From: Macrostomum lignano
Lineage: Eukaryota
Assembly (NCBI GenBank): GCA_002269645.1
Contig: NIVC01000127.1
Span: 372,001-436,000, forward strand
Length of the DNA stretch: 64,000 nt
Reading direction: 5' to 3'
Numbering within the stretch: position 1 is the first letter of the stretch; each line of letters opens with the position of its first letter. The position numbers were made by a program, and so were the translations under genes. Shown here in pieces: positions 3,145-60,789 of the stretch. The notes beneath the pieces were generated by a model, which did no database searches, was not told where the DNA came from, and saw only the letters and a program-made list of their open reading frames with translations.

Positions 3145-4323
3145 TTAATGTTGGCGAAAGGCCACCAACGGAGGTGGCGGCAAGACTTCAAAGTAGCCCA
3201 CTTGGCGAACGGAGCCAAGCCGACGCGTGAGGAAGCGACGCCGTTTTGCGGCGGGACTCGTGCTGCTTCTGCTGCTGTTGCTTCTGCTGCAGTCGCGCTG
3301 GCGCTGCTGAGCAATCACAGGCGCGCGCCGAGAAGCAGTAGAGCGAGTAGGCGTAGGGCAGGTCGTTGCGTTGAATAGTACCGGTGGCGGCGACCTTCTA
3401 CTAGCGTGCTGCTGACTCTGCTGAAGGCGTGGACTGCGGCTGCGCGATCGGCTGGCGATGCGGCTGACCGCCCGGCCGACCAGACGCAAGGCCCGCTGAC
3501 CAAACGAGGCGCTGCGACTTCGGTTACTGCAGGCTTCCTGTTGTTGCTGTTGTTGGATCGGCTCAGTCCACGGCTCAACCCACGGCTCCAGTCGCTCGAT
3601 CCAATTAGTAGGATAAGAGCCGATTTCGTGAGCGAAATCTATTAGCAGGGTCGATATGCCATTGATGCGACCCAACAGCTCCATCGTAGCGTCCATAGGC
3701 TGAATGAGGCTGGGGCCGAGACAGGCACCCAGATTCGGCGCTGGCATACGATTGATTTGGCTGTGCGAAGAAACACGCTTCAGAAACAGGCAGAGATAGC
3801 GCATGGCTGTAAGTTGGCTACTCGGCAATAGCAGACAGCCGAGGCGAAGAATCTTGACTTGCTTCTCCAGGGTTCGCCTGTTTGTTGCCTGTAGCAAAAT
3901 CTTGGACAATTCACGAGGTACAAGGGGCTCTGGAAGCTCTCTCAGCCAGGCTTTTAGCACCGAACAGACATCGTGAACTGGAGTAGCATCTAGTATAGGC
4001 AGTCCCTTGTCCAGCCGCAGTCTTAAATCTCTCTGACGCACCTTCGAGCCTTCAATTCGAAACAATCCTTCGACTTGTAGATGATCGCTGATAAAGGAAC
4101 AGCAGGCAACGAGGACAGTCGGGACTTTACCTATTCCCTCAATCTCGGTGGATGCCTGCTGCAGCAGAGGTCGTCCAAAGCATTGTGTACTTCGTTCTGT
4201 GTAAGCTGGTAGTCTGGCCTTGGGTAGCTGGATGCCTAGCTGAAGCAATTCTTTAACGGCAAGAGCGCAGACCTGCCGCTGCTTTGCTTCGCTGAGTTTT
4301 TCGCAGTAAGTTGTGCCAGACAT
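3145..4323 (-). CDS. ARHGAP11: Intronless RhoGAP-domain protein, ARHGAP11-like
   Basis: 392-aa ORF with RhoGAP motifs FGRPL, VPTVLVACC..HLQVEGLFRIEGS (arginine finger), VCSVLKAWLRELPEPL, NRMPAPNLGACLGPSL. The N-terminal segment resembles ARHGAP11A; basic low-complexity tail. Confidence 0.8.
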   Translation of the reverse strand: MSGTTYCEKLSEAKQRQVCALAVKELLQLGIQLPKARLPAYTERSTQCFGRPLLQQASTEIEGIGKVPTVLVACCSFISDHLQVEGLFRIEGSKVRQRDLRLRLDKGLPILDATPVHDVCSVLKAWLRELPEPLVPRELSKILLQATNRRTLEKQVKILRLGCLLLPSSQLTAMRYLCLFLKRVSSHSQINRMPAPNLGACLGPSLIQPMDATMELLGRINGISTLLIDFAHEIGSYPTNWIERLEPWVEPWTEPIQQQQQQEACSNRSRSASFGQRALRLVGRAVSRIASRSRSRSPRLQQSQQHASRRSPPPVLFNATTCPTPTRSTASRRAPVIAQQRQRDCSRSNSSRSSTSPAAKRRRFLTRRLGSVRQVGYFEVLPPPPLVAFRQH

Positions 4324-6889: not shown

Positions 6890-8399
6890 GACGGGCGGAA
6901 AAATGGCTTGGTATTCCTACTGTTAAGCCAATCAAACCGGGGGGGGGGGGGCGGCATGTCACCCGCACGTGACCTAGGCAGGCCGGCCACCTCCCCCCCG
7001 CAAGCACCACGCCTCACCGGTTTAACACCCAACCAAAGCTACGCATGGTCGGAGCGAAGTACATGCATATAAAAATGACCGAAAGGATCGAATAAAAAAA
7101 TCAAAACTCAATTTTTGAGATTAAAAACTAAAAAATCATTCAGAGGAAATCTAAACTCAATCGCCTTATCAGTTTACCATAAGTATTGCGACAGCTGCTT
7201 ATGTGCATCTCAATCATCTAAAGTATGATCGATCCGTGAATCTTACTCTAAGAAACAGGTAGCTGTTTCGCCTTCCACACTAAAAAGTCGTGGCTTTTTA
7301 AGCTCTAAGCCAGTGGCGTAGCCAGCATTTTCATCTGAGTGCGAGGGGTCACAACAAATTACACTTGTATTTGTCGTATTACTAGTGCGTTTAGTATGAG
7401 CAACTTAGTAGAGAACGCATATCGCTGAATGGGGTTTCGCCACTAGTAGACGCAAATTCGGTCGAGGAAAATCCGCGCTGGAAAAATCTTATTTACCGCG
7501 AGGGGCGAGACCGCGGTTTTTTTTAATTTTTTAATTACATGCATATAGTTTGTGAAAACCTGATACGCGTAAGAGTACCTTCGTACCTACTTATAGTAGA
7601 AAAAAAGTAAATAACTTACATAAACTATGCTTTGTCTTGTACGAGTTAATGTATCTTTGATTTGTACGAGTTAAAAATGGAATCACGGTCAGATTTTACT
7701 TGTAGTTATTACATGTACAGTTTTAACTTTTCATCTTCAGCAAACAGCAAGGTACATCAAACAGATTTTGGCAGGAATAACAGCTAACTTAATATTCCTG
7801 CATGACAGAATGTGTAGTGCTTTCACGCGTAGAATGACGCATATAGCACCTGAGAGTGCTGCTTCCGTTGCAATTGCAACAAGCCTGATGCAATGCAGTG
7901 GTGCATTTTGCCGGGAAATAAATGCTTGCATGTATATAGTAAACAAACCTGCCTTGGTGAATGCGCGTATTAAGCGTTGCGAGAGGAGAAGCAACCAAGA
8001 AGCCATATAATAGGTCGGACTGATGCGAACAACAGGATACTGCAGTAGCACACCATTGCTACATAAATCTTCGCTGATTACGTATACACATACCGTTGCT
8101 GCAGTAACTGGTATGCATATGCTATCTTTCATCTTGATCTGTATACTACTATATAAACATATATTCACTTCGGTGTCGTGTGGCTTGGTTTTCAATTGAA
8201 GCAGTTTGTTTGACTGTAAACTTCGGTAATTGTGCAATTATAACGAGCGCAGCAGGGCACAATTGCCTTTGTAGTAACAGTGGCAAATTTCTGGCATTTT
8301 TAAAAAAATGCAGAAAGCACCCAAAGATCGCTTTAGGGACCTCTCAGACCAGTCAACATGGCCCTTAACTAGGCATCGATGCTTCACTCGACACGTTTC

Positions 8400-8775: not shown

Positions 8776-10970
8776 TCGCTTGCTCCCAATTCCTAATAAA
8801 ACTTCATCGCCGTTGTACATGAACCACTAGAAAAACCGGATGGCATCATTGAATACAATAATTGCGTTAACTAAAGAAATGTTCTATTTCGGTGATTTGC
8901 AAAAGGCCTTCAAAACTAGTTTCCAAGAAAAGATTGGTATCGATCCTTCTATTTATACTGGCGCTTGCCTTTTAATTTACTTTAAAAAGATGAACTCGTA
9001 TAAGACTGCATGAGGGTCAGTTAGTCGCAATTATAAGCATTAAGCTAGAATTCTAATCTTAATTTTGAGCCCAGCAAACTGCAGCTCAAAATAATTGCCC
9101 ACTGTCACTGATAAGGCCGAGCTTGCCACTTTGCCCTGTGTTAAACTAATCGAACTTTACACAAAAGAGCACAATATAATGATTAGCAATTTAGAGCCCC
9201 GCAGTGCCAGTCAGCACCAGTCGAATCTTTGAACTGCGATACCAGCTACACTGCATGGGTCAAAGTTATGCAGCTAAGATTACCTCAAGCGACCTTCTTT
9301 ACCGCTATCTCTAATCACTTTAATATTATAATAACTATAGCTTATTTATTTGAGTTACTTTCGAGTGCCCGGGTCTATCTGACGGTACTATTACTGCAGA
9401 AGACACTATAGAAGAATTAGATAGACCCTCAACAATTTTCTGCGCACATTCTATATAGACATGAGGCGTCGCGTGCTCAGCACTGACCCTGCGACCTGGT
9501 GCGGCCAGCGCGCCCCTAGCGGTGCGGTTAGTCAGACAGACCGATATGGACGCATTATCGGGGCCAATGCGGGCCTCAAGTCTCGATAAGGCCGGGGCAC
9601 ATGGGCAGCATCATGGCACAAGTCAATGCTAGAAATGCAAAAGTCTGGCCCCAAAAGCCAATAGCAGTGATGCCATGCCAGCCCTGTTGAAGCAGCAATC
9701 TGACAAACGGACAAGCAGCCACCCCAAGGGAGGGGGGTGGTCGGCGCTTCATATCGCCACTCCTACGGGGCGGCGGCTTATTTATGCCAGCGCCTGCGGC
9801 GGACGCCAACAGCACAGACTGGTCTGCCTGAAAGAAGACTAGTTGCAGACAATTATAGTCGCGCATTTTACACGGAGCCGAATGAACAATAAGCCAGGAT
9901 TATTAGGTGAGTTTGCCCGATTATAACAAGCAGCTCGGCAGTGGTCAGCTGTGTACATTTCCTCCCGAGACTGGCAATAATTTAGCCTCAGCCTCCGCAC
10001 CTGCGCCTATACTATACTCAGGAGGATGTGTGCACAGTCTGTCAGACTCTGAGCAATAATCAACTACTGCTAGTAATTAATAAGACTTTTGTTCTTCTTT
10101 CGGCGAAAATAAACGCAACCAAACGTATCTGACCTACTGACCTACGCTATAAAACTATCGCCGCTTGCCTTATTTTAATTTTTAATAAAGGAGCAACAAC
10201 CAGAGACCCAAACAGGGTAATTATAATTTATGGCAGAGCTGTGAGACACGAAGAGGCCAAAATAAAACAGTGGGCTGCTTTTAATTTTTATTAAACAGCA
10301 GAGCTGAAGGGGTAAGCTGCAGCAATACAATGGGCGGCGAATTCAACAGCAATTATGCAGAATAGATCGAATTAAAAGATCAAGCTTGCACAGAGACTTT
10401 TTGAACATGCTTGATATTGCACAATGAACATGTAGTCAGATACAAGAGATTAATCAGTAAAAGCAATGCATACAACACAGAGGCTACACGTAATCATAGC
10501 AGAAAAAGCAAAATTAAAAAGAATAAGATACAAGCAATATTCTAGCGGTTGTCAGCCATGCACTTTAATACATGGCTTTATTTGCAGTTAACCCCAATAT
10601 ATGATGCAATTACACCATGGATTGAATAATAAAAAATGCGACGCGCCACAATGCATATTGCAACAGTATGAATCGGAGAATTAATTAGGCGAGCGAAACT
10701 ATTTAATCGTTAATAAATAAATAAATTATCGACTCCGATTTAATGAGTGCTGCAGTTACAAATTATTATTTATAATATTAATAGAATTAAAGAACTGATA
10801 GTGTTATAAAAATACGACAGAATTCAGAAAACAGCCTGGCGAGTGGCGTTATAAACATTTGACAAAGGTGACAAACGACTGAGAATTTGTGAGTAGCGCA
10901 TGCACTGAGCACGACTGTCTAAGAACTGCTGCGATACTGTGAAATTTGGGGCGATTTTCTAGGGGGGGGG

Positions 10971-11181
10971 GGTTAGGGGCGATTCTCTATGAGGTTAGGG
11001 ATGATTCTCTATGAGGTTAGGGGCGATTCTCTATGAGGTTAGGGGCGATTCTCTATGGGGTTAGGGACGATTCTCTATGGGGTTAGGGGCGATTCTCTAT
11101 GGGGTTAGGGGCGATTCTCTATGGGGTTAGTGGCGATTTTCTATGGGGTTAGTGGCGATTTTCTATGGGGTTAGGGGCGAT
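10971..11181. repeat. Minisatellite, 21-bp unit ggggttaggggcgattctctat-like, ~10 copies
   Basis: Tandem units visible; each contains TTAGGG or a variant. Confidence 0.9.
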
Positions 11182-11266
11182 TATCAAGCAGAAAAGCGGT
11201 CAAAAAAAGAAAACGCCAACGGACTGCGAAATGCTATAGGCTGTTTTGTTCATAAAAGTACATCAA

Positions 11267-14200
11267 TCAGTTTTTCCTCATAGGCGGCTTCAGCGCCCAG
11301 TTCGGCGCCCCGTCAGGAGGCGGCCGCTGCGACCTGGAGCGCAGCGGATCCCGGATGCAGCGGCCCAGCTGCTGCTTCTGCTTGGTGGTGGCGCAGTTGT
11401 CCATGTAAACCTGGTCAAGCTGGCGTTTCAATCGTTTCACTTCGTCCGATTCCCAGGCGAGCTCGCGGACGCGCAGCTGGTCGGAGCCGCCGGAGCCGCA
11501 CTCCTCGTCGGAGCTGGTGTAGTCCCGGGTGAGGATGACGCGGAACTTCTCCAGCTCGTCCGAGCTGAGGCTGGTGGCCACGAGTTCGAAGCTTTTCTGG
11601 CGTCGGTTCAGCTTCTGGAAGGTCGACGATGAGGATAAGAGGTTGGCGGAGAATGTGATTTGGGGACTCTGATGGGAGAATGGGATTTGGGGATGCTGAT
11701 GGGAGAATGGGATTTGGGATGCAGGTGGGAGCATGGGATTTGGGGTGCTGTTGGGACAATTTGATTTGAGGATTCAGGTGGGAGAATGGGATTTGAGGAT
11801 GATTGTGGGAGAATGGGATTTGGGGATTCTAATGCGAGAATGGGATTTGGGGATGCTTGTGGGAGAGTGGGATTTGAGGATTCTGGTGGGAGAATGGGAT
11901 TTGGGGATGCTGATAAGAGAATGGGATTTGGGGATGCTTGTGGGAGAGTGGGATTTGGGGATTCTAATGCGAGAATGGGATTTGGGGATGCTTGTGGGAG
12001 AGTGGGATTTGAGGATTCTGGTGGGAGAATGGGATTTGGGGATGCTGATGGGAGAATGGGATTTGGGGATGCTTGTGGGAGAGTGGGATTTAAGGATTCT
12101 GGTGGGAGAATGGGATTTGGGGATGCTGATAAGAGAATGGGATTTGGGGATGCTGATGGGAGAATGGGATTTGAGGATTCTAATGCGAGAATGGGATTTG
12201 GGGATGCTGATGGGAGAATGGGATTTGAGGATTCTAATGCGAGAATGGGATTTGGGGATGCTGATGGGAGAGTGGGATTTGAGGATTCTAATGCGAGAAT
12301 GGGATTTTGGGATGCTTGTGGGAGAGTGGGATTTGAGGATTCTGGTGGGAGAATGGGATTTGGGATGCTGATAAGAGAATGGGATTTGGGGATGCTTGTG
12401 GGAGAGTGGGATTTGAGGATTCTGGTGGGAGAATGGGATTTGGGGATGCTGATAAGAGAATGGGATTTGGGGATGCTGATGGGAGAATGGGATTTGAGGA
12501 TTCTAATGCGAGAATGGGATTTGGGGATGCTGATGGGAGAATGGGATTTGAGGATTCTAATGCGAGAATGGGATTTGGGGATGCTGATGGGAGAGTGGGA
12601 TTTGAGGATTCTGGTGGGAGAATGGGATTTGGGATGCTGATAAGAGAATGGGATTTGGGGATGCTGATAAGAGAATGGGATTTGGGGATGCTGATAAGAG
12701 AATGGGATTTGGGGATGCTGATAAGAGAATGGGATTTGGGGATGCTTATGGGAGAGTGGAATTTGAGTATTCTAATGCGAGAATGGGATTTTGGGATGCT
12801 TGTGGGAGAGTGGGGTTTGAGGATTCTGGTGGGAGAATGGGATCTGGGGATGCTGATGGGAGAATGGGATTTGGGGATGCTGATGGGAGAATGAGTTTCT
12901 TCAAGGAATTTAGAATCTCGATTTGGACCGGAGCATATTTATGGAGGAATGGAATGAGAAATGGTTTCGATACGGCAATTATCGGTACCTTACCATCCGG
13001 TTTTGAGTGGTAGTCACAAAGCTAATCAAATAATAATGCAAATTCTATACAATATGACACTGCACTAAAGTAGAAGCGCCCCTAAAGAATCCCACGGGCC
13101 AAGTCTGCAGACTAGAAGTAGATTTTTAATCTGAACAGGCAGATAAGCAAGCAGTATTGGACGATTGGCCAAATGGAATAACTCATTACTGTTAGGCGAA
13201 GCTTGCTGCGCATCTGCTTTCTAAAATCCCAGAAAATGTCAGTCAGCCGGCTAGTTTTAGGCAGTCCTGCGCGCAAAGATAACAGTTGCTTATTGTAAAT
13301 CGGGGCGAATTGAATTTTTGATTTTAAACTTGCACTGCTGGAGCCAGAGAGGACGATAAGTAGAATAGAATGCTTTTATTCCGACAAAATTTTGCTGGAG
13401 GTTAATAGACTAAGCAAGTGAGCAGTCTGATTACATTATGGCGCAGTTTGATCCGAATCTGCTTCCCAAAGTCCCAGAAAATCTCCGACAGTCGGCCAGC
13501 CTTTGGCAGCCCTGCGAAGTTTAAATAATTCATTATAATAATTTGCATTATTAGCTATGGTCTGCGTTGTTTAATTCGGGCAAGGGTGAAGAGTGAACAA
13601 GAGAGTGAACAGAAAGGTGAATAGAATGAACAAGAGAGTGAACAGAAAGGTGAATAGAATGAACAAGAGAGTGAACAGAAAGAAGAAGAGAGTGAACAAG
13701 AGAGTGAACAGAAAGGTGAATAGAATGAACAAGAGAGTGAACAGAAAGGTGAATAGAGTGAACAAGAGAGTGAACAGAAAGGTGAAGAGAGTGAACAAGA
13801 GAGTGAACAGAAAGGTGAATAGAGTGAACAAGAGAGTGAACAGAAAGGTGAATAGAGTGAACAAGAGAGTGAACAGAAAGGTGAAGAGAGTGAACAAGAG
13901 AGTGAACAGAAAGGTGAAGAGAGTGAATGAGAGAAAGAACAAGAGAGTGAACAGAAAGGTGAAGAGAGTGAATGAGAGAGTGAACAGAAAGGTGAAGAGA
14001 GTGAATGAGAGAGTGAACAGAAAGGTGAAGAGAGTGAATGAGAGAGTGAACAAGAGAGTGAACAGAAAGGTGAATAGAATGAACAAGAGAGTGAACAGAA
14101 AGAAGAAGAGAGTGAACAAGAGAGTGAACAGAAAGGTGAAGAGAGTGAACGAGAGAGTGAACAGAAAGGTGAATAGAGTGAACAAGAGAGTGAACAGAAA

Positions 14201-17200
14201 GGTGAATAGAGTGAACAAGAGAGTGAACAGAAAGGTGAAGAGAGTGAATGAGAGAGTGAACAGAAAGGTGAAGAGAGTGAATGAGAGAGTGAACAGAAAG
14301 GTGAAGAGAGTGAATGAGAGAAAGAACAAGAGAGTGAACAGAAAGGTGAAGAGAGTGAATGAGAGAGTGAACAGAAAGGTGAAGAGAGTGAATGAGAGAG
14401 TGAACAAGAGAGTGAACAGAAAGGTGAATAGAATGAACAAGAGAGTGAACAGAAAGAAGAAGAGAGTGAACAAGAGAGTGAACAGAAAGGTGAAGGGAGT
14501 GAATGAGAGTGAACAGAAAGGTGAAGAGAGTGAATGAGAGTGAACAGAAAGGTGAAGAGAGTGAACAGAAAGGTGAAGAGAGTGAACAGAAAGGTGAAGA
14601 GAGTGAACAAGAGAGTGAACAGAAAGGTGAAGAGAGTGAACAAGAGAGTGAACAGAAAGGTGAAGAGAGTGAACAGAAAAGTGAAGAGAGTGAACAAGAG
14701 AGTGAAGAGAGTGGTGAAGAGAGTGAACAAGAGAGTGAAGAGAGTGGTGAAGAGAGTGAACAAGAGAGTGAACAGAAAGGTGAAGAGAGTGAATAAGAGA
14801 GTGAACAGAAAAGTGAAGAGAGTGAACAAGAGAGTGAAGAGAGTGAAGATGAAGAAGTCCTCATTTTGGCTTTAAGCAGTTACAAAAAATTGCAAATACA
14901 AGCACAATGCAGCCCTTCTTGCCAATCCTAGTTGGAAACAGGGATAAAATATACGACTAGAATTGGTCCCACGGTTGGCACACAGGAGAAGGAAAAGCAT
15001 TGAAATCAAAATTACACTTAGGCGAAATTTAGTCCGAATCTGCTTCCCAAAGTCTCTGAAAATCTCGCACATTCGACCGGCTTTTGGTAGCCCTGCGAAA
15101 AAAACGCATTTAGATGGAAGAGATACAGGCTTTGTTTCAATCGTTTTTTGCGCTTGCATTATTGATTCGAGAAGAGCGGTGGATGGTGTAAAAGATAATA
15201 AAGATGCGAAAATGTTACGAAATCGATCTATTGATTTAGACTAGGCTATGCTCAAATAAGTTAGGACAGTTGGATCCTATTCTATGTCTATTCTCAGTGG
15301 TAATCAAGGTCTACTCTCTTGATGATGAAGGGTCTATCCTCAGGGGTAATCAAGGTCTACTCTCTGGGTGATGGTCTATTCTCGGGGGTATTCAAGGTTA
15401 CTCTCTTGATGATGAAGAGTCTATTCTCAGGTGTAATAAAGGTCTACTCTCTGGGTGATAAAGGGTCTATGCTCAAGGTGACGGAGGTCTATTCCCAAGG
15501 TGATAAAGGGTCTAGGCTCAAGGTGACGGAGGTCTATTCCCAAGGTGATAAAGGGTCTATGCTCAAGGTGACGGAGGTCTATTCCCAAAGTGATAAAGGG
15601 TCTAGGCTCAAGGTGACGGAGGTCTATTCCCAAGGTGATAAAGGGTCTATGCTCAAGGTGACGGAGGTCTATTCCCAAAGTGATAAAGGGTCTAGGCTCA
15701 AGGTGACGGAGGTCTATTCCCAAGGTGCTGAGGGTCTATTCTCAGGAATAATGAAGGATGGATTCTGGATGGTGATAGGGCGATTTTGCATAGACTAGAT
15801 TCCAGAATTAACTAAAAAATGGCAGATTTGAGCGCAAGGAAATCAGAAAAAGCAGAAAATGCGATGTAAGTAATATAAATATTAAACTCGTTTCTTTGGC
15901 TTCAGCAAGTGTTATTGGTATTTTTGTTCCAAATTTTTTATTGGAATAAAGTTGATAAATGCCAAAATTTGATACGCAGGCATTAGTAGATTAAAACTAT
16001 GCTTTTCGAAGAATAATATATCCCTTACTAAGCCGCGATATTTGTCGTGCACTTGTCGCTTAAAGTCGCTAAAAATGACGGACAGTCTGCCAGACTTGGG
16101 CAGGTCTACAATATAGCGCATAGTTTTTATGGGCACAAATGCAAGCAAGCTACTGAAAGTAGTACAATTTGGCGGCACTATTGCCTGCTGATTTGGAATG
16201 GAAACGTCTGAAACAAACAGCTACAGTAGAGCTGGGGCTATCCTATTAACTATAGCGAGAACATAACTCACAAGCTGCTTAAACTTGCATCTGGCCTTCA
16301 GGGCAAAATCGGAAAACATGTACAGAATACGACCGCGACAAGGAATCCCTGAAACACAGACGGAGTCAATAATCTCTGAAAACAGTGCAGAGTATATACT
16401 GCTCTTGACCAGCTGTGCTAGAACGACACCATGCTCGTTGGAAACGGCGCTTTTCTTTGGTTCAAAGAATTATTTCCTGGATTACTAAGCACTAAATAAC
16501 TTACAGACAGTCTCATTTTCAAACGACTTGCGGAACGAAAATTTTGAAATATATACAGCAGCCTACACGAGGTGGGGATTCCTTCGGATGGAGGGCGGCG
16601 ACCGCGATTATTTTTTTATATCGAGATTTATATGTGCAGAGATAAGAAAGTCGCAAGTGCTTTGTGACCCGGCAGTAGTAGACTATTACTAGCAGTAGGT
16701 AGTCTCGGGTTTAACTTAAAAAGACAGACTCACGCTAATCCGATATTTGGCCCGAATTTTGGTGCCAAAATTGGAGTGCAAATAGTTAATCCGACTGTCC
16801 TTAGGGAGGTCTGCAATCGATGCCAGTAAAATCAATAAGCGATACGCTTCGGTAGGAGTAAAGAGCGAGGGCCAAGGAAGGAAAACATCGCAAGCTGCTG
16901 AGGCGCTAAGAAATTTGAAAATGCCTACTTAAACTTAGTAGTAGTATGTATGAAATTGCACGTATTTATCAATCTTACAAAGCTTCTAAACCGGAAGCGC
17001 ATTTTCCGGCGCAAATCGATAAATAGGAAGATAGTGCGCGATGCGTAGGGCAGCTCTGAAATCAAGTGTTTTATGGTGCTGCTTTGGGGCCGGAATCTGC
17101 CGCTAAGGTAGACAGGCCTAATTGCCTACTGAAAACGTCGCTAGAGATCAATTTACGGAGTTCAGACAGACGAAGCACTGAACAGGTGATTTTCGTTTAT

Positions 17201-20200
17201 AAGTTTATTAACTTCGATCCAAACTACAGATACTAGAATAACTAGATGGACCACTCAGCACATTTGCGTGTAAGCTACTTGCAGTTCAGTAGAAAGTTAT
17301 ACAGAAGCATTTTAATGTATTTTTCAAGACAAGGCTTATTTATTTTCTATGAAACACTAAAACCTACCCCAAGCTGCCAAGTACATTTCAGTGGGGTGTT
17401 GGCCAATGTACAATACGAGTGAACCAATTAGCAAGTTGTTTACGTCTGCAAGCTTTGTTTGTTTGTTTGGCTTCTAAACTTATCAAAGTCATTTGAGCTT
17501 ATGTTTTCTTCTTTGCTACTGAACTGGAAGTAGAAAGCTGTTTTACTAAATAAATATTCACAAGTGGCCTTATCTAGTTATTTTAGTATTTTGTGCACTA
17601 AACAGAGTAATGATCTTGATTAGACCTCAATACAGAGTTCCATTGCATCGAGATTCACCCCTAGAATCCTAAGCATCCCTTGACAGGAACGGATCCCGAG
17701 ACTTCTACCCTCACAATCAAGCTAATAGCTTGCTAAAACAAAGAAAAACAAGAGAGCCACAACACCAAAAAACCATGACAGCTGCTCATCCTGTCTTACT
17801 GTCTCTCTGTACTTGGCCCTAAGCGCGCTGCGTATGTGACAAAACACCCTGTCAGGCCGGGATTTGTACGGCAAATCTGTAAGCATTAAATATTTTGTTA
17901 AATAATAATTCCTAGCCTCTAATCAGCATTTAGCCGGAACCAAATTAGACGAAATGGATTAGAAACGTCACAAGAGCACCTATTGATTAAATTGAACAGA
18001 AGAGACCAGATTGACTAAATCAAACCAACTTGGGTCTCACATTAAGTTTCAAAGCGTGCCTAGACTCGAAGCGCATCTTAGAGAATGCTGTTGAGATTCG
18101 AAATTCGCTTCGCAGTCCTGAAATTGAACAGGTCTGAACTATGCCGCTCTGCCTTGTTTCAAATTCACTTTTTCTCATTGCTCAGCACTTGTTGGAAGGA
18201 GAAACCGCCATTTGCCCGGCTAATCCCAACTTACTAGCGCTTTGAAACGCTTTTTAGCGTCGGTTCTAAACGAAATGAAAATCATTGAGATCCGCGCCTC
18301 TTTCGGCAGCCCTGCAAACGCGCGCAATTGTTAAGGCGGGGCATTGAGCTTAAACAAATAGGGGAGATCTGAACTCGGCTTTCACAGGCCTGGAAACGGC
18401 TTTGCTTCATTTCTGTTATCATTTAAACAGAAAATATTTAATACTACTGTAAAAATGCGACATCTACTACTTACGCAAAGTTTAAGTCGCGTTCTGGCGT
18501 TTAGTTTAAACGACTTGAATATAAAGTTAATTCGGCCATCTTTAGGCAGCCCTGGAAATCGGCCAATCGGTTGTTGCCTCTTGTATATTAACTAAGAAGA
18601 GATATTTGCATCTGGAAACGCTGCATGCAGCTCAGTGGACTCAAGCTCAAGGCGAATAATAGGGAAGCCAGAACTAGTTAAAGTTTGATTCTTCAGTTAA
18701 GCAAGAGTATATATCCCTATCCGTTGCCCCATCAACACTTACACACAGTTTAAGCCGGGCTCTGGCATTCCGTCTAAAGGACAGAAATATAAAATTAATT
18801 CGGCCCTCTTTTGGCAGACCTAAAAAAACAGATTGCATACGAATAAATTGGATTCTCTTGGCCCAGCAGCTGACAGAGTCAGGCTACATTTTTGTCAGTG
18901 TCAATTGACTTGACCGGAGAATCTGGAAACGCTGCAGCTAAAGTTTAAGCATTCGAATCCATAGCAGCCGGAGTCAGACTGGAGGCGACACGCAATGACA
19001 CATAACTTGATAAATACTAATTAGTCGCAGCACTTACAGAAGTTTTCAATCTAAGCCGCATATCGCGACGGAATTCAGCGAACATGGCGACAGTACGCCT
19101 TAGCAGTTCTACAATTTTTTTCAATAATTTAAATATAGTAACAGTGCACAAATATCCTTTTAATACTACTATCCAGCGGCCTAGTTAGTAGCAGATGCAC
19201 ATGGTGTACTATAAAATGTCAGATCTATAAAAAACTGGGTATAAACAGCTGACAAGGGCAGAATAGCGGGACGTTACCAATTGGTGAAGAAAGACAGCAG
19301 TCAGAACCCCATTTTTATTGAAAATAATAGTTAATTAGGTAATTAATTCATACGCGACTTATATTGATGGCAGCAATTTTATTGCCATTACTCAACAATT
19401 TATTGCTGAATATAATATATAAAAACAAATAATAATATTATTTAAAAGTGAGTGCATTGCTTCGAAAGGTGAAAGATATAGTGTTTTAAAATTATAAATG
19501 AAATTATTGCCTCTGAATTATATGTCATATTTAGTAAATTTTAACATAGATAATTTAATTTGCTCAAGCCAAAGAACTTGCGACGTTTCCAGACCAAGTA
19601 GGCAAGGAGAAAAAGTGACACATTTGGAATTACACAAGCTGCTTATATAATAATTATTAACAGTGCTTGTACTTGCTATCAGTAGTAGTATGCAGAGAAT
19701 ATTGTTTCAAATGCACAAATTCGCAAGCAAGATATTCAACTAGTTAGTAGGCTTAAGGGAGGCGACCAACAAAGAGTTAAAGAGTTAAATTTATTGATTT
19801 TTTTGGTGCACCAATATCTCAGCTTTGCATCCCTGCCAACTTAATAAGCACCAATTCTTATTAAATGCATCATATACACAAAATTATCATTCCGTTTTGG
19901 ACACCCATCGTATTTATCCAGCTATAAAAATAATTGATTTTCAATATCAAGCCGCCAATCTCAAGCCTACACTAATATGCTCAATACTACGGTAGCTAAC
20001 AGCTGCACATTAAGTGCCAAAAAATGCCAAACTCACTCTGCCAGACGTCGTCCGGCCAGCCTTTGCCTTCGGCCATCTCTTTAGCCTTAGCCATGACCAT
20101 GGCGGCAACTTGTTGGTTGGGCTCCGCGGAGAAGCTAAGCGAGAGGACAAGTGGGAATCGACAGGAGCAGGAATTAGCCAATTTAATGCAGCCATACATT

Positions 20201-23126
20201 ATTAATAAACAATGGGGACGGCAACTCACTGAAGGATTTGGGCACGGCAACCCACTGAAGGATTTGGGGACGGCAACCCACTGAAGGATTTGGGGATGGG
20301 GACGGCAACTCACTGAAGGATTTGGGGACGGCAACTCACTGAAGGATTTGGGGATGGGGACGGCAACCCACTGAAGGATTTGGGGATGGGGACGGCAACC
20401 CACTGAAGGATTTGGGGATGGGGACGGCAACTCACTGAAGGATTTGGGGACGGCAACTCACTGAAGGATTTGGGGATGGGGACGGCAACTCACTGAAGGA
20501 TTTGGGGATGGGGACGGCAACTCACTGAAGGATTTGGGGATGGGGACGGCAACTCACTGAAGGATTTGGGGATGGGGACGGCAACCCACTGAAGGATTTG
20601 GGGATGGGGACGGCAACCCACTGAAGGATTTGGGGGTGGGGACGGCAACCCACTGAAGGATTTGGGGATGGGCACGGCAACCCACTGAAGAATTTGGGCA
20701 CGGCAACCCACTGAAGAATTTGGGGATGGGGACGGCAACCCACTGAAGGATTTGGGGATGGGCACGGCAACCCACTGAAGAATTTGGGCACGGCAACTCA
20801 CTGAAGGATTTGGGGATGGGGACGGCAACCCACTGAAGGATTTGGGGATGGGCACGGCAACCCACTGAAGAATTTGGGCACGGCAACCCACTGAAGAATT
20901 TGGGGATGGGGACGGCAACCCACTGAAGGATTTGGGGATGGGGACGGCAACCCACTGTAGGATTTGGGGGTGGGGACGGCAACCCACTGAAGGATTTGGG
21001 GATGGGGACGGCAACCCACTGAAGGATTTTGGGGATGGGGACGGCAACCCACTGAAGTATTTGGGGATGGGGAGGGCAACCCACTGAAGGATTTGGGGAT
21101 GGGGAGGGCAACCCACTGAAGGATTTGGGGATGGGGAGGGCAACCCACTGAAGGATTTGGGGGTGAGGACAGCAACCCACTGAAGGATTTTGGGGATGGG
21201 GACGGCAACCCACTGAAGTATTTGGGGATGGGGAGGGCAACCCACTGAAGGATTTGGGGGTGAGGACGGCAACCCACTGAAGGATTTTGGGGATGGGGAC
21301 GGCAACCCACTGAAGGATTTGGGGATGGGGACGGCAACCCACTGAAGGATTTGGGGGTGAGGACGGCAACCCACTGAAGGATTTGGGGATGGGGAGGGCA
21401 ACCCACTGAAGGATTTGGGGGTGAGGACGGCAACTCACTGAAGGATTTTGGGGATGGGGACGGCAACCCACTGAAGGACTCCGCATTCAAGCTTTACTTA
21501 CGGCATGCTAAAATCGAATAGGTGAGGTCCGTTTCCTTTAAGCATTTTGTAGGCTCGTCGCATGATAGTCTTGCACTCGGGAGGCACGTCGCCGCCGCTT
21601 CCACCGCCGCCGCCGCCGCCGCCGCTGCCGAAGCCGCTGACGCCGGCTCCGGAATAATCGGCGGACAAGTCGAGTCGAGGAATTTTGGCATAGGGGAATC
21701 CGGCGCTAAGACTGTCGTCGTTCAGCTCCTCCGTGATGATGCAATCGTCTTCCTCCTCTTCGTCGGCTTCGTAATCGTCGCCTTCCACCTGTGATTCGAC
21801 ATTCGTACATAACGGCTGCGTTTTAGACACAACATTAATGTGCTCGGGCGATCAAATGACCTTGAGTAATAGCAGAGTCAAATGACCTTGAGTGATAGCA
21901 GAGTCAAATGACCTTGAGTGATAGCAGAGTCAAATGACCTTGAGTGATAGCAGAGTCAAATGACCTTGAGTGATAGCAGAGTCAAATGACCTCGAGTGAT
22001 AGCAGAGTCAAATGACCTTGAGTGATAGCAGAGTCAAATGACCTCGAGTGATAGCAGAGTCAAATGACCTCGAGTGATAGCAGAGTCAAATGACCTCGAG
22101 TGATAGCAGAGTCAAATGACCTTGAGTGATAGCAGAGTCAAATGACCTTGAGTGATAGCAGAGTCAAATGACCTCGAGTGATAGCAGAGTCAAATGACCT
22201 TGAGTGATAGCAGAGTCAAATGACCTCGAGTGATAGCAGAGTCAAATGACCTTGAGTGATAGCAGAGTCAAATGACCTTGAGTGATAGCAGAGTCAAATG
22301 ACCTTCAGTGATAGCAGAGTCAAATGACCTTGAGTGATAGCAGAGTCAAATGACCTTGAGTGATAGCAGAGTCAAATGACCTTGAGTGATAGCAGAGTCA
22401 AATGACCTTGAGTGATAGCAGAGTCAAATGACCTTGAGTGATAGCAGAGTCAAATGACCTTGAGTGATAGCAGAGTCAAATGACCTTGAGTGATAGCAGA
22501 GTCAAATGACCTTCAGTGATAGCAGAGTCAAATGACCTTGAGTGATAGCAGAGTCAAATGACCTTCAGTGATAGCAGAGTCAAATGACCTTCAGTGATAG
22601 CAGAGTCAAATGACCTTCGGTGATAGCAGATTCAAATGACCTTCAGTGACGGTGGCAACACAGTTATAAAACGACTAACCTTAATGGCGCCAAGCGCCGC
22701 GCCCAGCACGCTACTGGCGCCCATGTCGCCAAGTACAGACGCCTTCTCTTCCTTAGTTGAAGCATTGGCGCCACCAGACAAAGACGAGGCGGCAGTTGAT
22801 TCGCGATGCAGCTGCTGATGCTGCGATGGCGGCGGCTGTTGCTGCTGGTGCTGCTGCTGTCCGGACACGCTGGCGACAAGGCCGGCAGCTTCTAGCTCGG
22901 CGAGGCGGTCGCTTCGATCGAATGCCCGACAATACCTGGGCTCCATGGAGTGAACCACGTGAGTGTGCAGATTGCCGATGATTTTCAGTGCAGAGAACAG
23001 TTCGCGCTCGGCCATGGACTCTACGAGCATTTGCGCGTTAGTGATGGTGGATTCGAACAGGGTGAGAGGCGAGAAACTGTTGCCAGGCGGCAGCAGGCTC
23101 GAGTGCGGGCTGAGTACGTCTGCCAT
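11267..23126 (-). CDS. Gene A: uncharacterised C14orf93/DUF4616-like protein with a mutually exclusive exon array. Constitutive exons 23126-22680, 21788-21502, 20134-20037; one variable exon; then 11614-11267.
   Basis: GT-AG sites with consistent phases. Homologous to gene B (FSPLTLFE.TITNAQML.ESMA.REL; LKGNGPHLF.FSMP; KL.RRQKSFEL; RDYTSSDE; LRVR.LAWES; LD; RPPP..P.WAL). The family call rests on recalled similarity of these motifs to C14orf93. Confidence 0.75.
11665..12890. repeat. Intronic G-rich minisatellite, ~21-bp unit gggagaatgggatttggggat-like
   Basis: Tandem units in the last intron of gene A; source of the EWDLG/MGFGD repeat ORFs. Confidence 0.95.
13190..13266 (-). CDS. Gene A variable exon 14: (R)LPKTSRLTDIFWDFRKQMRSKLRLT
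   Basis: 77 nt, gcgcag/gtaatg, phase 1 to phase 0. Confidence 0.85.
13435..13511 (-). CDS. Gene A variable exon 13: (R)LPKAGRLSEIFWDFGKQIRIKLRHN
   Basis: 77 nt, tcgcag/gtaatc, phase 1 to phase 0. Confidence 0.85.
13587..14850. repeat. Purine-rich minisatellite (agagtgaacaag / agagtgaacagaaaggtgaag units)
   Basis: Tandem 9-12-bp modules, between variable exons 12 and 13. Confidence 0.95.
15016..15092 (-). CDS. Gene A variable exon 12: (R)LPKAGRMCEIFRDFGKQIRTKFRLS
   Basis: 77 nt, tcgcag/gtaatt, phase 1 to phase 0. Confidence 0.85.
15290..15760. repeat. Minisatellite, 45-bp unit ctcaaggtgacggaggtctattcccaaggtgataaagggtctatg
   Basis: About 6 near-perfect copies plus degenerate flanks, between variable exons 11 and 12. 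Confidence 0.9.
16029..16105 (-). CDS. Gene A variable exon 11: (N)LPKSGRLSVIFSDFKRQVHDKYRGL
   Basis: 77 nt, ttgtag/gtaagg, phase 1 to phase 0. Confidence 0.85.
16272..16348 (-). CDS. Gene A variable exon 10: (R)IPCRGRILYMFSDFALKARCKFKQL
   Basis: 77 nt, tttcag/gtgagt, phase 1 to phase 0. Confidence 0.85.
16505..16581 (-). CDS. Gene A variable exon 9: (R)IPTSCRLLYIFQNFRSASRLKMRLS
   Basis: 77 nt, weaker aag acceptor, gtaagt donor, phase 1 to phase 0. Confidence 0.75.
16734..16810 (-). CDS. Gene A variable exon 8: (N)LPKDSRINYLHSNFGTKIRAKYRIS
   Basis: 77 nt, ttgcag/gtgagt, phase 1 to phase 0. Confidence 0.85.
16979..17055 (-). CDS. Gene A variable exon 7: (K)LPYASRTIFLFIDLRRKMRFRFRSF
   Basis: 77 nt, tttcag/gtaaga, phase 1 to phase 0. 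Confidence 0.85.
17800..17876 (-). CDS. Gene A variable exon 6: (N)LPYKSRPDRVFCHIRSALRAKYRET
   Basis: 77 nt, ttacag/gtaaga, phase 1 to phase 0. Confidence 0.85.
18041..18117 (-). CDS. Gene A variable exon 5: (R)LRSEFRISTAFSKMRFESRHALKLN
   Basis: 77 nt, tttcag/gtgaga, phase 1 to phase 0. Confidence 0.8.
18235..18311 (-). CDS. Gene A variable exon 4: (R)LPKEARISMIFISFRTDAKKRFKAL
   Basis: 77 nt, ttgcag/gtaagt, phase 1 to phase 0. Confidence 0.85.
18475..18551 (-). CDS. Gene A variable exon 3: (R)LPKDGRINFIFKSFKLNARTRLKLC
   Basis: 77 nt, ttccag/gtaagt, phase 1 to phase 0. Confidence 0.85.
18743..18819 (-). CDS. Gene A variable exon 2: (S)LPKEGRINFIFLSFRRNARARLKLC
   Basis: 77 nt, ttttag/gtaagt, phase 1 to phase 0. 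Confidence 0.85.
19038..19108 (-). CDS. Gene A variable exon 1: (K)LLRRTVAMFAEFRRDMRLRLKTS
   Basis: 71 nt, ttgtag/gtaagt, phase 1 to phase 0, open frame. Confidence 0.75.
19575..19598 (-). promoter_or_regulatory. Putative intronic docking site for RNA-structure-guided exon choice (pre-mRNA CUUGGUCUGGAAACGUCGCAAGUU)
   Basis: Lies between constitutive exon 20037 and the first variable exon. It is in opposite orientation to a motif family recurring upstream of about 10 variable exons. Confidence 0.75.
20213..21478. repeat. Intronic minisatellite, ~32-bp unit ggcaacccactgaaggatttggggatggggac
   Basis: Tandem units in a gene A intron. Confidence 0.95.
21853..22650. repeat. Intronic minisatellite, 26-bp unit gcagagtcaaatgaccttgagtgata
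   Basis: About 30 near-identical copies. Confidence 0.95.
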
Positions 23127-23187
23127 TCCGGAGCGGCGGGCATGAACGGAACAGTAATGGATGAATTAATTAGTGACGAGTTCAAGT

Positions 23188-24150
23188 GAACCTGTAAATC
23201 CCTAAATTGAACTTGTAAATCCCTAAATTGAACCTGTAAATCCCTAAATTGAACCTGTAAATCCCTAAATTGAACCTGTAAATCCCTAAATTGAACCTGT
23301 AAATCCCTAAATTGAACCTGTAAATCCCTAAATTGAACCTGTAAATCCCTAAATTGAACCTGTAAATCCCATAATTCAACCTGCAACTACCATAATCGAA
23401 GCTATAAATCCCATAATTGAACCTGCAACTCCCTAAATTGAACCTGCAACTCCCTAAATTGAACCTAAAACTCCCTAAATTGAACCTGTAAATCCCTAAA
23501 TTGAACCTGCAACTCCCTAAATTGAACCTAAAACTCCCTAAATTGAACCTGTAAATCCCTAAATTGAACCTGCAACTCCCTAAATTGAACCTAAAACTCC
23601 CTAAATTGAACCTGTAAATCCCTAAATTGAACCTGTAAATCCCTAAATTGAACTTGTAAATCCCTAAATTGGACTTGTAAATCCCATAATTCAACCTGCA
23701 ACTCCCTAAATCGAACCGGTAAATCCCTAAATTGAACCTGCAACTCCCTAAATTGAACCTAAAACTCCCTAAATTGAACCTGTAAATCCCTAAATTGAAC
23801 CTGCAACTCCCTAAATTGAACCTAAAACTCCCTAAATTGAACCTGTAAATCCCTAAATTGAACCTGCAACTCCCTAAATTGAACCTAAAACTCCCTAAAT
23901 TGAACCTGTAAATCCCTAAATTGAACCTGCAACTCCCTAAATTGAACCTAAAACTCCCTAAATTGAACCTGTAAATCCCTAAATTGAACCTGTAAATCCC
24001 TAAATTGAACTTGTAAATCCCTAAATTGGACTTGTAAATCCCATAAGTCAACCTGCAACTACCATAATCCAGGCTGTAAATTCCATAATTGAACCTGTAA
24101 GTCATAATTGAACATGTAACTACCATAATCAGAGCTGTAAATCATAAAAT
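23188..24150. repeat. Minisatellite, 21-bp unit tgaacctgtaaatccctaaat
   Basis: About 40 copies directly upstream of the first coding exon of gene A. Confidence 0.95.
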
Positions 24151-25080: not shown

Positions 25081-34475
<9,395 letters not shown>

Positions 34476-36047
34476 TGCTGAGTTTGTTGCAGAAGCCTGG
34501 TAGAGAGCAGCTGTCAAGTGTTATGATTGGCTTTAGCGGGTTTCTATCGACAGAGGAGCTGGAATTGGCAGCAATGGTTAACCAAAAACTGTCAATCAGT
34601 TATGTCACTGTCATATACATGCATACATGCACAACCTCCAAAATTCGGTCGGCCGTGTGACTTAGTTTTAACAAAATGCGACAGTTTTTGGCCAAAAATG
34701 CGACTTACAGGTAAAAAAAACTGTAAAGCAAATTTAATGCAACTTTGGGTAAACTGCGTTAAACTCTTGCTTGGCCAAATTGCCGTCTTGTGCTTTTGTG
34801 GGGGCTAGTCACTAATTGCAGATTGTAATGCTCTTGGAAATAGCAATTTTACTAATCTATAAGTATTCTATGTAATGTATAAATACACTATATTGTATGC
34901 AATGTTATATTACTAAAAAACTCAACTAATTACAAAACTTGGAAATTGAGTATCCAAGAAAATGGTTGAGTTACTCAACAAAAAATTGTCAAGCCAGATA
35001 CTCAACAGGCACAATAATAAAGTACTATAGTTAATAAGCTAAATATCTGCTAGATAATATTAACTTTAAAGAAACTAACATTAACAATAACCTATAATGT
35101 TATAAATATATAACAGAATTCAAAACTTAATATAGATAATAATATATAAACCTTTACCTTAGCACCATAGTTTAGGTGACATATATGCCAAGATTTCTTG
35201 GTGTACAACAAGGGTCTTATATTTTTAGCATACATAAGGGTATATCCCGGCATATATGACAGTAGATACATGCCAAATAATAAATTTTTGTATTGGCGCA
35301 CAAACCTAGTATACAAACAAGGTTTCATCAATTTTTCTAGCATTAAACCTGGGCATATACTAATATATGATTTGAACTATGGCCTTAGTAGCTATACTCT
35401 GGATCATATAGTATATGCCCAAAAAATTTGGACATGCATTGGCCTTGCATGCCAAAAGTAGGCATGCACAATTGGCATATATCATTCTTACAAAAATCAT
35501 GTATGCACACCTAGCATATACTTTATAAAATCAACACAGAATAGTTATTGTGAAATGGAAAAAAAGATGAAAAAAGTTTATTTTAAGTATAATTTTCAAG
35601 CTTTACAGGTTTTTAAGCTTGTAATAAAGCATTGATTTTCCACTATGAATAATATTGCTGAAAAAGCAGAAAAATAAAATAAATGATTTGCCATTAAGGT
35701 TCCATGGTATTATGCAATTCAAAAATGGAGTACTTATAGGAATGGCGGCTGTGTCTATAATATTTAGCTTATAGGCATGGCTATTATCATCAATATAAAA
35801 TGCATGTTCTATAGGGCTCTCTTATAAGCAAATGGTGGCTTAGTAGATATGTCAATTGCCTTGTGATTGGGTGTAGGAAGGTTTAAATCCCAAGAGGTTG
35901 GTCTTTTTTAATTGAAAATTTTTTAGCAAATAGATTTTTTCCATCTTGAACTTTTTAAGTTTTTTATTAAATTAAAAAAAAAATAAATTAAATTTTTAAT
36001 AAGAATAATTTGCTAAATCCTAGTGCAGCTGCAAATATATATGTAGC

Positions 36048-43737: not shown

Positions 43738-43829
43738 GCTGCTGACAACTGGCTCTGCGGGTAATAGATGGGATTATAAGATAGACGATGAGGCTGCAGC
43801 ATAAGTCTAGATTCTAGATCCTAGATTCC

Positions 43830-44400
43830 AGAATAGAAACTAGACTCTAGAATAGAAACAATGAAGCCTCTAGGATAGAAACTATGGAGACCATAGAATA
43901 GAAACTAGAGACTGTAGGATAGAAACTAGAGACTGTAGGATAGAAACTATAGAGACTCTACGAAAGAAACTATAAAGACTATAAACTATAAAAATAGGAT
44001 AGAAACTATGGAGACTCTCGGATAGAAACTATAGAGACTCTAGGATAGGAATTAGGTACACTATAGTCTATAGTCAATAGAGACACTAGGTTAGAAACTA
44101 GAGACACTAGGATAGAAACTATAGAGACACTAGGATAGAAACTATAGAGACACTAGGATAGAAACTATAGAGACACTAGGATAGAAACTATAGAGACACT
44201 AGGATAGAAACTATAGAGACACTAGGATAGAAACTATAGAGACACTAGGATAGAAACTAGAGAGACACTAGGATAGAAACTAGAGAGACACTAGGATAGA
44301 AACTAGAGAGACACTAGGATAGAAACTATAGAGACACTAGGATAGAAACTAGAGAGACACTAGGATAGAAACTATAGAGGCACTAGGATAGAAACTGGAG
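43830..44400. repeat. Minisatellite, 23-bp unit ctatagagacactaggatagaaa
   Basis: Tandem units upstream of the K2P start codon. Confidence 0.9.
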
Positions 44401-59900: not shown

Positions 59901-60789
59901 ACTGCCGTTTTTATTGCGTCGCTTATGGCTGCCTGGTTGCCGGCTTGGGCCTTGGCCAGCTTCTTCTCCATCAGGCGCTGCAAGGTCAGCAGCCATCTGT
60001 AGAGAATGTCGCGGAGCACCTGCGACGGAGCGGAGGTAGGGAGGCAATGCAAGAGCTTAAGCTCTGACTCTGCGATGAGATATTATGCTCGTGAAGTGAA
60101 TCTATATGAAATCTCATTCTCGGTTTGCAACTAGGAGCGTATATAAGATAAAATCTAACCGTGAGATTTCTATTCTAAAAATCTCACTATGAGATTTTGA
60201 CCCTAGCATGCGATCTCACCAAAAGATAACGACCCTAGAATGAGATCTCACCATGAGATTACGACCCTAGAATGAGATCTCACCATGAGATTACGACCCT
60301 AAAATGAGATCTCACCATGAGATTACGACCCTAGAATGAGATCTAATCATGGGATTACGACCCTCGAATGAGATCTAACCATAATACTCCGATCCTAGTA
60401 TGAGATTTGATCATGAGATTACGACTCTAGAATGAGATATAGATTGCATCACTAGGTGTAAGCATTGTCCCTCTCCAGCCGCACACCTGCAGATAGAGAT
60501 GACCGGGCAGCAGCAGCTCCTGGAACATCAGGCTATCGTTGGATTCAACGGCGCACAGGCCACGTACGCTGGCGTGCAGTTTGCGCAGCATCAGGCAGAG
60601 CAGGTAGAACTTGTCAGCATCCGATTCGCAGTGGGTGAGCACGGAGCGCTGCATCAGATGGCGGCCAAGGTCCAAGTCGCTGGCGTCGGCCGGTACGCGC
60701 AGCTTTTGCCTGGCAACCGGGCGACGGGGAATAAATGTACAGAGAGCTACAGGTGCGGCGTCAGTTGCTGATTGACTAACTAACTAGCC

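Follow-up and report, generated by a model that had tools for sequence, protein, structure and literature searches.

A tandem array of 14 putatively mutually exclusive exons with a candidate intronic docking site in a gene of the flatworm Macrostomum lignano

Gene A and its array of variable exons

A stretch of 64,000 nucleotides (nt) from the genome of Macrostomum lignano (assembly GCA_002269645.1, contig NIVC01000127.1, positions 372,001 to 436,000 of the forward strand), hereafter the window, was analyzed for a minus-strand gene (BOX15_Mlig011614g1, called gene A here) in which 14 homologous variable exons (v1 to v14 in the order of transcription) lie between two constitutive exons, and for intronic elements by which one of these exons might be chosen. 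Coordinates refer to the window, position 1 being its first letter, unless another locus is named. The model of gene A carrying v10 was identical to GenBank PAA90078.1. The exons of gene A were located as follows.

Exon 1: 22680-23126, minus strand, with the ATG at 23126, ending in phase 0; the spliced open reading frame (ORF) matches PAA90078.1 / P0021
Exon 2: 21502-21788, minus strand, 287 nt, ending in phase 2
Exon 3: 20037-20134, minus strand, constitutive, 98 nt, upstream of the array, ending in phase 1 and encoding ...AKAKEMAEGKGWPDDVWQ
v1: 19038-19108, minus strand, variable exon, 71 nt; KLLRRTVAMFAEFRRDMRLRLKTS, without the LP start
v2: 18743-18819, minus strand, variable exon, 77 nt
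v3: 18475-18551, minus strand, variable exon, 77 nt
v4: 18235-18311, minus strand, variable exon, 77 nt
v5: 18041-18117, minus strand, variable exon, 77 nt
v6: 17800-17876, minus strand, variable exon, 77 nt
v7: 16979-17055, minus strand, variable exon, 77 nt
v8: 16734-16810, minus strand, variable exon, 77 nt
v9: 16505-16581, minus strand, variable exon, 77 nt
v10: 16272-16348, minus strand, variable exon, 77 nt
v11: 16029-16105, minus strand, variable exon, 77 nt
v12: 15016-15092, minus strand, variable exon, 77 nt, donor GTAATT, with a satellite in the upstream intron
v13: 13435-13511, minus strand, variable exon, 77 nt, donor GTAATC
v14: 13190-13266, minus strand, variable exon, 77 nt, donor GTAATG
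Last exon, coding part: 11267-11614, minus strand, starting in phase 0 and ending ...PPMRKN, stop codon included (at about 11267)

An initial annotation of the window, made from its letters alone, had proposed 14 homologous minus-strand exons, thirteen of 77 nt and one of 71 nt (19038-19108), and all of them were confirmed, as were the flanking exons, exon 3 (20134-20037) leaving one spare base and the last exon beginning at 11614 in phase 0. Each of the 14 variable exons was preceded by AG and followed by GT, was entered in phase 1 and left in phase 0, and was free of stop codons when entered in phase 1. The encoded peptides shared the consensus LPKxxRxxxIFxxFRxxxRxKxRxx and, except for v1, could be aligned without internal gaps. 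A search for missed copies, which had been suggested with the annotation, was carried out with a hidden Markov model (HMM) built from the 14 peptides; against the six-frame translation of the 64-kb window it returned exactly these 14 exons (E 1e-6 to 2e-12), and the remaining matches among those listed (43816-43851 and 8287-8337) were at chance level (E 6, negative bit scores). Among 57 candidates in the 9.3-kb region that were bordered by AG and GT, compatible in phase and free of stops, a significant HMM score was obtained only for the 14 exons and for overlapping versions of them with alternative boundaries. No missed variable copy is present in the array, and the pattern is far beyond chance.

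With a single variable exon, the ORF of gene A comprised 416 amino acids (aa) for v1 or 418 aa for any other variant, and with none or two the last exon was read out of frame; the isoforms would differ only in a basic segment of 24-26 aa. It had been argued from the frame that exactly one variable exon must be used. The argument holds for zero or two exons, both of which shift the frame, but the frame alone would also permit 4, 7, 10 or 13 serial exons, a general caveat on multi-exon combinations raised in PMC6071210. On entry in phase 2, however, every variable exon (14 of 14) contained at least one stop codon, and three or more serial variable exons would therefore give a premature stop in the third. 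Aberrant products, out of frame with zero or two exons and truncated by a stop with three or more, should therefore undergo nonsense-mediated decay.

Candidate docking site, selectors and paralogous loci

The intron after exon 3 contained a 17-nt element, regarded here as a candidate docking site (dock), and elements upstream of the variable exons, regarded as candidate selectors, were the reverse complement of the whole or a part of it. A second conserved element lay in the same intron. The elements were located as follows.

Docking site: 19576-19592, minus strand, 17 nt, CTGGAAACGTCGCAAGT, 446 nt downstream of the exon 3 donor
Second first-intron element: 19330-19347, minus strand, ATTAATTACCTAATTAAC, 245 nt downstream of the dock
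v2 selector: 18923-18932, minus strand, GCGTTTCCAG(A), with extended pairing at 18940-18919
v3 selector: 18612-18621, minus strand, GCGTTTCCAG(A), with extended pairing at 18634-18605
v4 selector: 18390-18398, minus strand, CGTTTCCAG
v6 selector: 17960-17974, minus strand, CTTGTGACGTTTCTA
v7 selector: 17129-17141, minus strand, GCGACGTTTTCAG
v8 selector: 16881-16895, minus strand, GCTTGCGATGTTTTC
v9 selector: 16650-16658, minus strand, ACTTGCGAC, a one-base bulge, then TTTC
v10 selector: 16439-16446, minus strand, CGTTTCCA, with extended pairing at 16459-16429
v11 selector: 16199-16208, minus strand, GACGTTTCCA
Possible displaced v13 selector: 14930-14941, minus strand, CCTGTTTCCAAC, 1.4 kb from the v13 acceptor

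The dock, which as RNA reads CUGGAAACGUCGCAAGU, occurred once in the 64-kb window and once in each of three related loci (L001, L002 and L003), of which L001 is a second copy of the gene A locus and L002 and L003 are paralogous arrays. The 17-mer was the sole k-mer of at least 10 nt common to the first introns of the three array loci (window, L002 and L003). The introns of L002 and L003 that held the identical dock could not otherwise be aligned by MAFFT, and the dock was therefore taken as an island of conservation. When up to two mismatches to a 14-nt core were allowed, the window gave four matches against 0.24 expected, namely the dock and three selectors, all four oriented as pairing within the transcript requires.

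Clear selectors, with the core CGTTTCC about 50-115 nt upstream of the acceptor, were found for 9 of the 14 variable exons of gene A (v2-v4 and v6-v11); for the selectors listed above, the distance to the acceptor was about 53-111 nt. Duplex energies were calculated from 34-nt windows, together with counts of contiguous helices; RNAduplex on whole introns was dropped because huge internal loops inflated the background energies. With the dock, the selectors of v2-v4 and v6-v11 gave -22 to -28 kcal/mol, compared with about -15 +/- 2.5 kcal/mol for shuffled introns, and contiguous helices of at least 9 bp to the dock core numbered 9 in the 2.8-kb array compared with 17 along the rest of that strand (61 kb). 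In an unbiased k-mer count upstream of the 26 variable exons of the three loci, only the selector core was enriched (CGTTTC in 15 of 26, GACGTTT in 11 of 26). The v13 candidate is 1.4 kb distant because a satellite of 1.25 kb intervenes, and upstream of v5 a weak selector-like GGTTTCT was present at about 18205. An origin of the dock and selectors from a miniature inverted-repeat transposable element (MITE) or an inverted repeat was rejected, as neither the rest of the window nor the flanks of the retrieved loci contained the motif. Searches of the window for a second docking site or a downstream motif serving v12-v14 gave none. A weak, short motif, CTTGCTTA, recurred 20-45 nt 3' of the donors of v2, v13 and v14 (about 18710, 13415 and 13150, minus strand); a search for its pairing partner gave none, and the motif is too short to call.

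The second intron element had the form ATTAATTA(C/T)CTAATTAA (the ATTAATTAYCTAATTAA element) and was also present in L002 (12506-12524) and L003 (12016-12034), its distance downstream of the dock being 245 nt in the window, 224 nt in L002 and 129 nt in L003. It consists of two TAATTA units and is nearly self-complementary. The element may be part of the control of the array; a regulator may bind it, it may correspond to the Dscam locus control region, or it may be a DNA site of the homeodomain type.

L001 was 98.1% identical to the gene A locus and encoded 14 identical variable peptides; its variable exons differed from those of the window by 4 substitutions in 1,072 nt, all synonymous, and no substitution fell in the dock or the selectors. 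The protein of L002 was 77% identical to that of gene A over the aligned region and its gene had five 77-nt variable exons, whereas that of L003 was about 46% identical with seven 77-nt variable exons. Of the 12 variable exons of these two loci, 11 had a selector upstream (4 of 5 in L002, 7 of 7 in L003). L004, a more distant paralogue, had one 77-nt exon, in the phase of the array exons and flanked by short introns, and the docking site was absent from it; this single-exon arrangement looks like the ancestral state. Gene B (PAA90079.1, BOX15_Mlig001175g1; 25081-34517, minus strand) is a tandem paralogue about 41% identical to gene A; the place of the array is taken in it by one unrelated exon of 33 aa, and it has no docking site. 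From the single exon without a dock in L004 and the unrelated exon in gene B it follows that array and dock originated within a single subfamily.

The best window matches of most paralogue variants ran in the same order as in the array: v1, v2, v3 and v5 of L002 matched v2/v3, v5, v6 and v8 of the window best, and v4 of L002 was about equally close to v7 and v8. This shared order points to an array older than the gene duplications, whose variants would have been kept apart since. Just upstream of exon 3 of L002, a 25-nt satellite (11462-11990 of that locus) contained TGTTTCCTGGAAACCGC, which resembles the selector core and the dock core placed back to back and may be a coincidence or a hint at the origin of the motif.

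RNA pairing as the probable mode of exon choice

From the sequence features described above, the 14 tandemly duplicated exons are probably mutually exclusive, with the choice most likely made by competing RNA pairing of the Dscam1 exon-6 type. One selector, with the core CGUUUCC and an extension to either side depending on the variant, would pair with the single dock downstream of exon 3; the duplex would loop out the intervening variants and bring the chosen acceptor beside the exon 3 donor, so that this exon would be spliced in. A further factor, for example a repressor, would silence the remaining downstream variants, as has been proposed for Dscam1. The reading frame gives a second layer of control, by which zero-exon and multi-exon products should be removed through nonsense-mediated decay.

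Antisense (selector) copies numbered at least 20 against one sense (dock) copy, all in the orientation required for pairing. The selectors complemented different, overlapping stretches of the dock, together spanning all 17 nt, and the complementarity past the core varied in direction (ACTTGCGAC for v9, CTTGTGACGTTTCTA for v6, and GCGTTTCCAGA for v2 and v3). Among the deviations from complementarity in 14 well-anchored selectors, G-U-compatible transitions outnumbered incompatible ones (22 vs 9, p = 0.01). Cells pairing in register amounted to 73%, compared with 35-47% with a slid partner, the register itself having been chosen for complementarity. Flank pairing with the own versus a foreign dock gave p = 0.012, a comparison confounded by the G/U-rich flanks of the window dock and therefore not relied on. 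Taken as a whole, these patterns strongly suggest base pairing between dock and selectors. If the intron motif were instead a protein-binding site (an RNA splicing enhancer or silencer, or a double-stranded DNA element) whose complementarity is incidental, the concentration of the strongest conservation in the short core CGTTTCC, the lack of significant two-sided covariation and the presence of a second conserved element without an obvious partner in the same intron would be accommodated. Such a site would not call for a single sense copy opposed by antisense copies that are all oriented for pairing, nor for complementarity that reaches past the core in varied directions and covers the entire dock, and the bias toward G-U-compatible substitutions is predicted by neither a DNA motif nor a protein motif. 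A protein-binding site is considered quite unlikely.

Transcript evidence for mutually exclusive choice was drawn from GenBank and UniProt gene models, of which the GenBank BOX15 models derive from genome-guided assembly of RNA sequencing (RNA-seq) reads (PMC5730564). The only variable exon was v10 in PAA90078.1 (gene A), v3 of L002 in PAA65011.1 and PAA81625.1 (the L002-type gene, two copies), and v8 in UniProt A0A1I8JJF2. Several further GenBank models were retained introns. To find transcripts with other variants, the 14 junctions of exon 3, variant and last exon were aligned and run against a protein database; the outcome was uninformative, since no match was obtained and even the known models were missed. 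Normal serial use of several variable exons, giving a protein in which the basic segment is repeated in tandem, would agree with UniProt A0A1I8J016 (v5 and a truncated v8), A0A1I8HCJ5 (v1, an extended v5 and a truncated v8) and several models of the L003 paralogue, in which exons are chained. With the conserved AG/GT borders, however, two exons put the last exon out of frame and any longer series meets a stop; the frame of the chained models is saved only by borders that are not conserved, for example those of a 66-nt internal piece of v8 or of a 108-nt extension of v5. These models stem from the older ML2 gene prediction, whereas those guided by RNA-seq contain a single variable exon. The chained models are regarded as prediction artefacts, and serial inclusion as very improbable.

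Several observations weigh against exclusive choice by pairing as a full account of the array. Just 2 of the 14 variants (v10 and v8) occurred alone in any database model, one model of a paralogue (PAA59491.1) skipped the entire array with a shift of frame, and two or three variable exons were chained in frame in the older UniProt models named above and, for a paralogue, in A0A1I8H780. Duplex and motif scans of the upstream regions gave no recognizable selector for v1, v12 and v14, the candidate for v13 was weak and distal, and that for v5 was weak; these five exons may be chosen another way or be unused. The covariation score was 0.160 compared with 0.145 in shuffles, 35 of 500 shuffles scoring as high; the dock core is invariant, and two-sided covariation is therefore limited to the flanks and marginal. 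The selectors descend from tandem duplication, and their similarity is therefore partly due to shared ancestry.

The scarcity of single-variant models, the missing selectors of v1, v12 and v14 and the weak, distal candidate of v13 would also be in line with an array that is largely a relic of duplication, in which one or a few exons (e.g., v8 and v10) are spliced, the rest are pseudo-exons and the selectors are alike through co-copying; the weaker donors of v12-v14 (GTAAT) and the invasion of two introns by satellites point the same way. All 14 exons, however, have kept their exact length, phase, AG/GT borders and open frame although their peptides have diverged to about 30-50% identity and their introns cannot be aligned. 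In addition, all four allelic or homeologous exon substitutions were synonymous, the best window matches of most paralogue variants keep the array order, and three paralogues whose proteins are 46-77% identical share all 17 nt of the dock, an agreement for which duplication of exon units is by itself insufficient. A relic is judged unlikely on these grounds, and mutually exclusive choice by RNA pairing is retained as the preferred explanation. The cluster proposed in the initial annotation has thereby gained support from the dock and selectors, from two paralogous loci of the same architecture and from the one-exon RNA-seq-guided models, while splicing of most variants is predicted. Its estimate of up to 14 isoforms stands as an upper bound, in view of the two variants found alone in models, the three without selectors and the weak candidates of v13 and v5.

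Protein family, known clusters and other features of the window

Gene A is a member of an uncharacterised metazoan family. All 20 of 20 protein-database matches to gene A were from M. lignano, and a family profile retrieved 508 relatives, the named ones being uncharacterised proteins of sea stars, a sea cucumber, a hemichordate, amphioxus, a brachiopod and a bivalve. The label C14orf93/DUF4616-like, attached to the gene in the initial annotation, had to be abandoned: no Pfam model matched gene A, eight M. lignano paralogues or the distant homologues, DUF4616 (PF15394) gave no match at E up to 10 for gene A, these paralogues and the homologues of amphioxus, sea star, hemichordate and bivalve, and the label was therefore rejected. 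A sequence search of PDB with the family profile gave no match, and no relative with a solved structure was found in it. The AlphaFold2 model of paralogue P0003 was poor overall, with a predicted template-modelling score (pTM) of 0.33, too low for a fold search, and was therefore used solely for local secondary structure. It consisted of helices and long disordered linkers, acidic and Gln-rich, and with moderate confidence the variable segment is predicted to form the first half of a 46-residue helix running into the constitutive KLSRRQ... part. Several UniProt entries of the family, models of L003-type loci and of the window locus (P0004, P0005, P0007, P0027, P0044 and P0185) bear unrelated automatic names (Exo70, Sec8, protein kinase, WASH and IMS_C), which, together with the chaining of exons, suggests that they are chimeric or ab initio models of the ML2 annotation. 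Because the annotations are inconsistent, with the variable exon single, skipped, chained or replaced by a retained intron, the isoform diversity of the family is invisible in databases.

The array had also been called Dscam-like, which suits its layout and likely mechanism but not its protein, which is unrelated to Dscam; Pfam scans of the gene A family gave no immunoglobulin (Ig) or fibronectin type III (FN3) domain. As in exon 6 of insect Dscam1 (PMC6071210), tandem homologous exons of equal length lie between constitutive exons, a single conserved dock stands in the intron that directly follows the upstream constitutive exon and is the most conserved intronic element, and complementary selectors precede variants, in gene A clearly 9 of the 14. 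The selectors overlap on the dock, and therefore one would pair at a time, a feature shared with Dscam1 exon 6. Dscam1 exon 6 belongs to Arthropoda and has 48 exons in a gene for an Ig/FN3 protein, whereas the present array has 14 exons in an unrelated gene of Platyhelminthes. The exons here are 77 nt long, and the frame therefore also polices exclusivity, unlike in Dscam1 exon 6. Further differences are that four or five of the 14 variants are without a clear selector, that three paralogous genes each bear an array with this dock, and that the pairing is predicted.

Exclusive choice through intronic pairing, as proposed for gene A, is a property of other arthropod clusters (14-3-3 zeta, Mhc, MRP1, Dscam1 exons 4 and 9, and srp; PMC6071210, PMC4691838), which mostly have 2-5 exons save those of Dscam1. 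In 14-3-3 zeta, Mhc, MRP1 and Dscam1 exons 4, 9 and 17 the docks lie downstream of the cluster, and srp has bidirectional pairs without a common dock (PMC6071210); the M. lignano dock lies upstream, like that of Dscam1 exon 6. In flatworms, cluster-8 of the muscle myosin heavy chain gene has two mutually exclusive exons (PMC3912159), and mutually exclusive splicing is therefore not new to the phylum. That cluster is ancient and common to other bilaterians, and no docking and selector system has been described for it, whereas the array of gene A numbers 14 exons and originated within a gene family of Macrostomum. In full-text searches of the literature these genes were not mentioned, and no docking and selector cluster was found for flatworms or for any other lophotrochozoan group.

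The tandem-duplication model of Ivanov and Pervouchine (2018; PMC6071210) agrees with the single exon of L004 and with arrays of 5-14 copies that have their own upstream selectors, and the passage from L004 to the arrays fits a duplication of the exon plus one arm of an intronic stem. The ancestral stem-loop of that model was not found in L004, which has no dock, and the origin of the first pair of dock and selector is therefore left unexplained. Pending transcript data, the array would extend a known mechanism to another phylum and another gene family, in the form of a large array. We moderately favour the view that flatworms evolved a docking and selector system of the Dscam1 exon-6 type independently, in an uncharacterised family of intracellular appearance, and have kept it in at least three paralogues (14, 5 and 7 variants). 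Large clusters with competing RNA structures are almost entirely arthropod, and an upstream dock is peculiar to Dscam1 exon 6 (PMC6071210); a flatworm cluster of 14 exons with the same layout would show convergent evolution of the mechanism. If this is true, RNA-pairing choice among many exons would be a general solution, repeatedly reachable by tandem exon duplication, and not a peculiarity of arthropods, and up to 14 x 5 x 7 isoform combinations of the variable basic helix might be available from the three genes together. The three paralogous arrays constitute built-in comparative data, and because transgenesis is efficient in M. lignano (PMC5730564), mutants of the dock and the selectors can be tested in the whole animal.

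Other features of the window were recorded as follows.

Satellites: 10969-11182, 11648-12893, 13585-14842, 15286-15744, 20212-21478, 21852-22649 and 23187-24119
Non-LTR (non-long-terminal-repeat) retrotransposon, apparently intact: 26757-31688, plus strand
RhoGAP-like ORF of another gene: 3145-4323, minus strand
WD-repeat-like ORF of another gene: 49008-49796, minus strand
Exons resembling the second-largest subunit of RNA polymerase: 55093-60052, minus strand

The seven satellites, all different, with periods of 21-45 nt and up to 46 copies, fill the introns and flanks of gene A, where they give rise to long spurious ORFs and to a strong GC skew; in L001 their lengths are not those of the window. 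Two of the seven part v12 and v13 from their former upstream sequence. One intron of gene B contains the retrotransposon, in the opposite orientation to the gene; its ORF1 has 372 aa, and its ORF2 (1,149 aa) includes endonuclease, reverse-transcriptase and RNase H-like parts. The exons resembling the RNA polymerase subunit are interrupted by coding-looking satellites.

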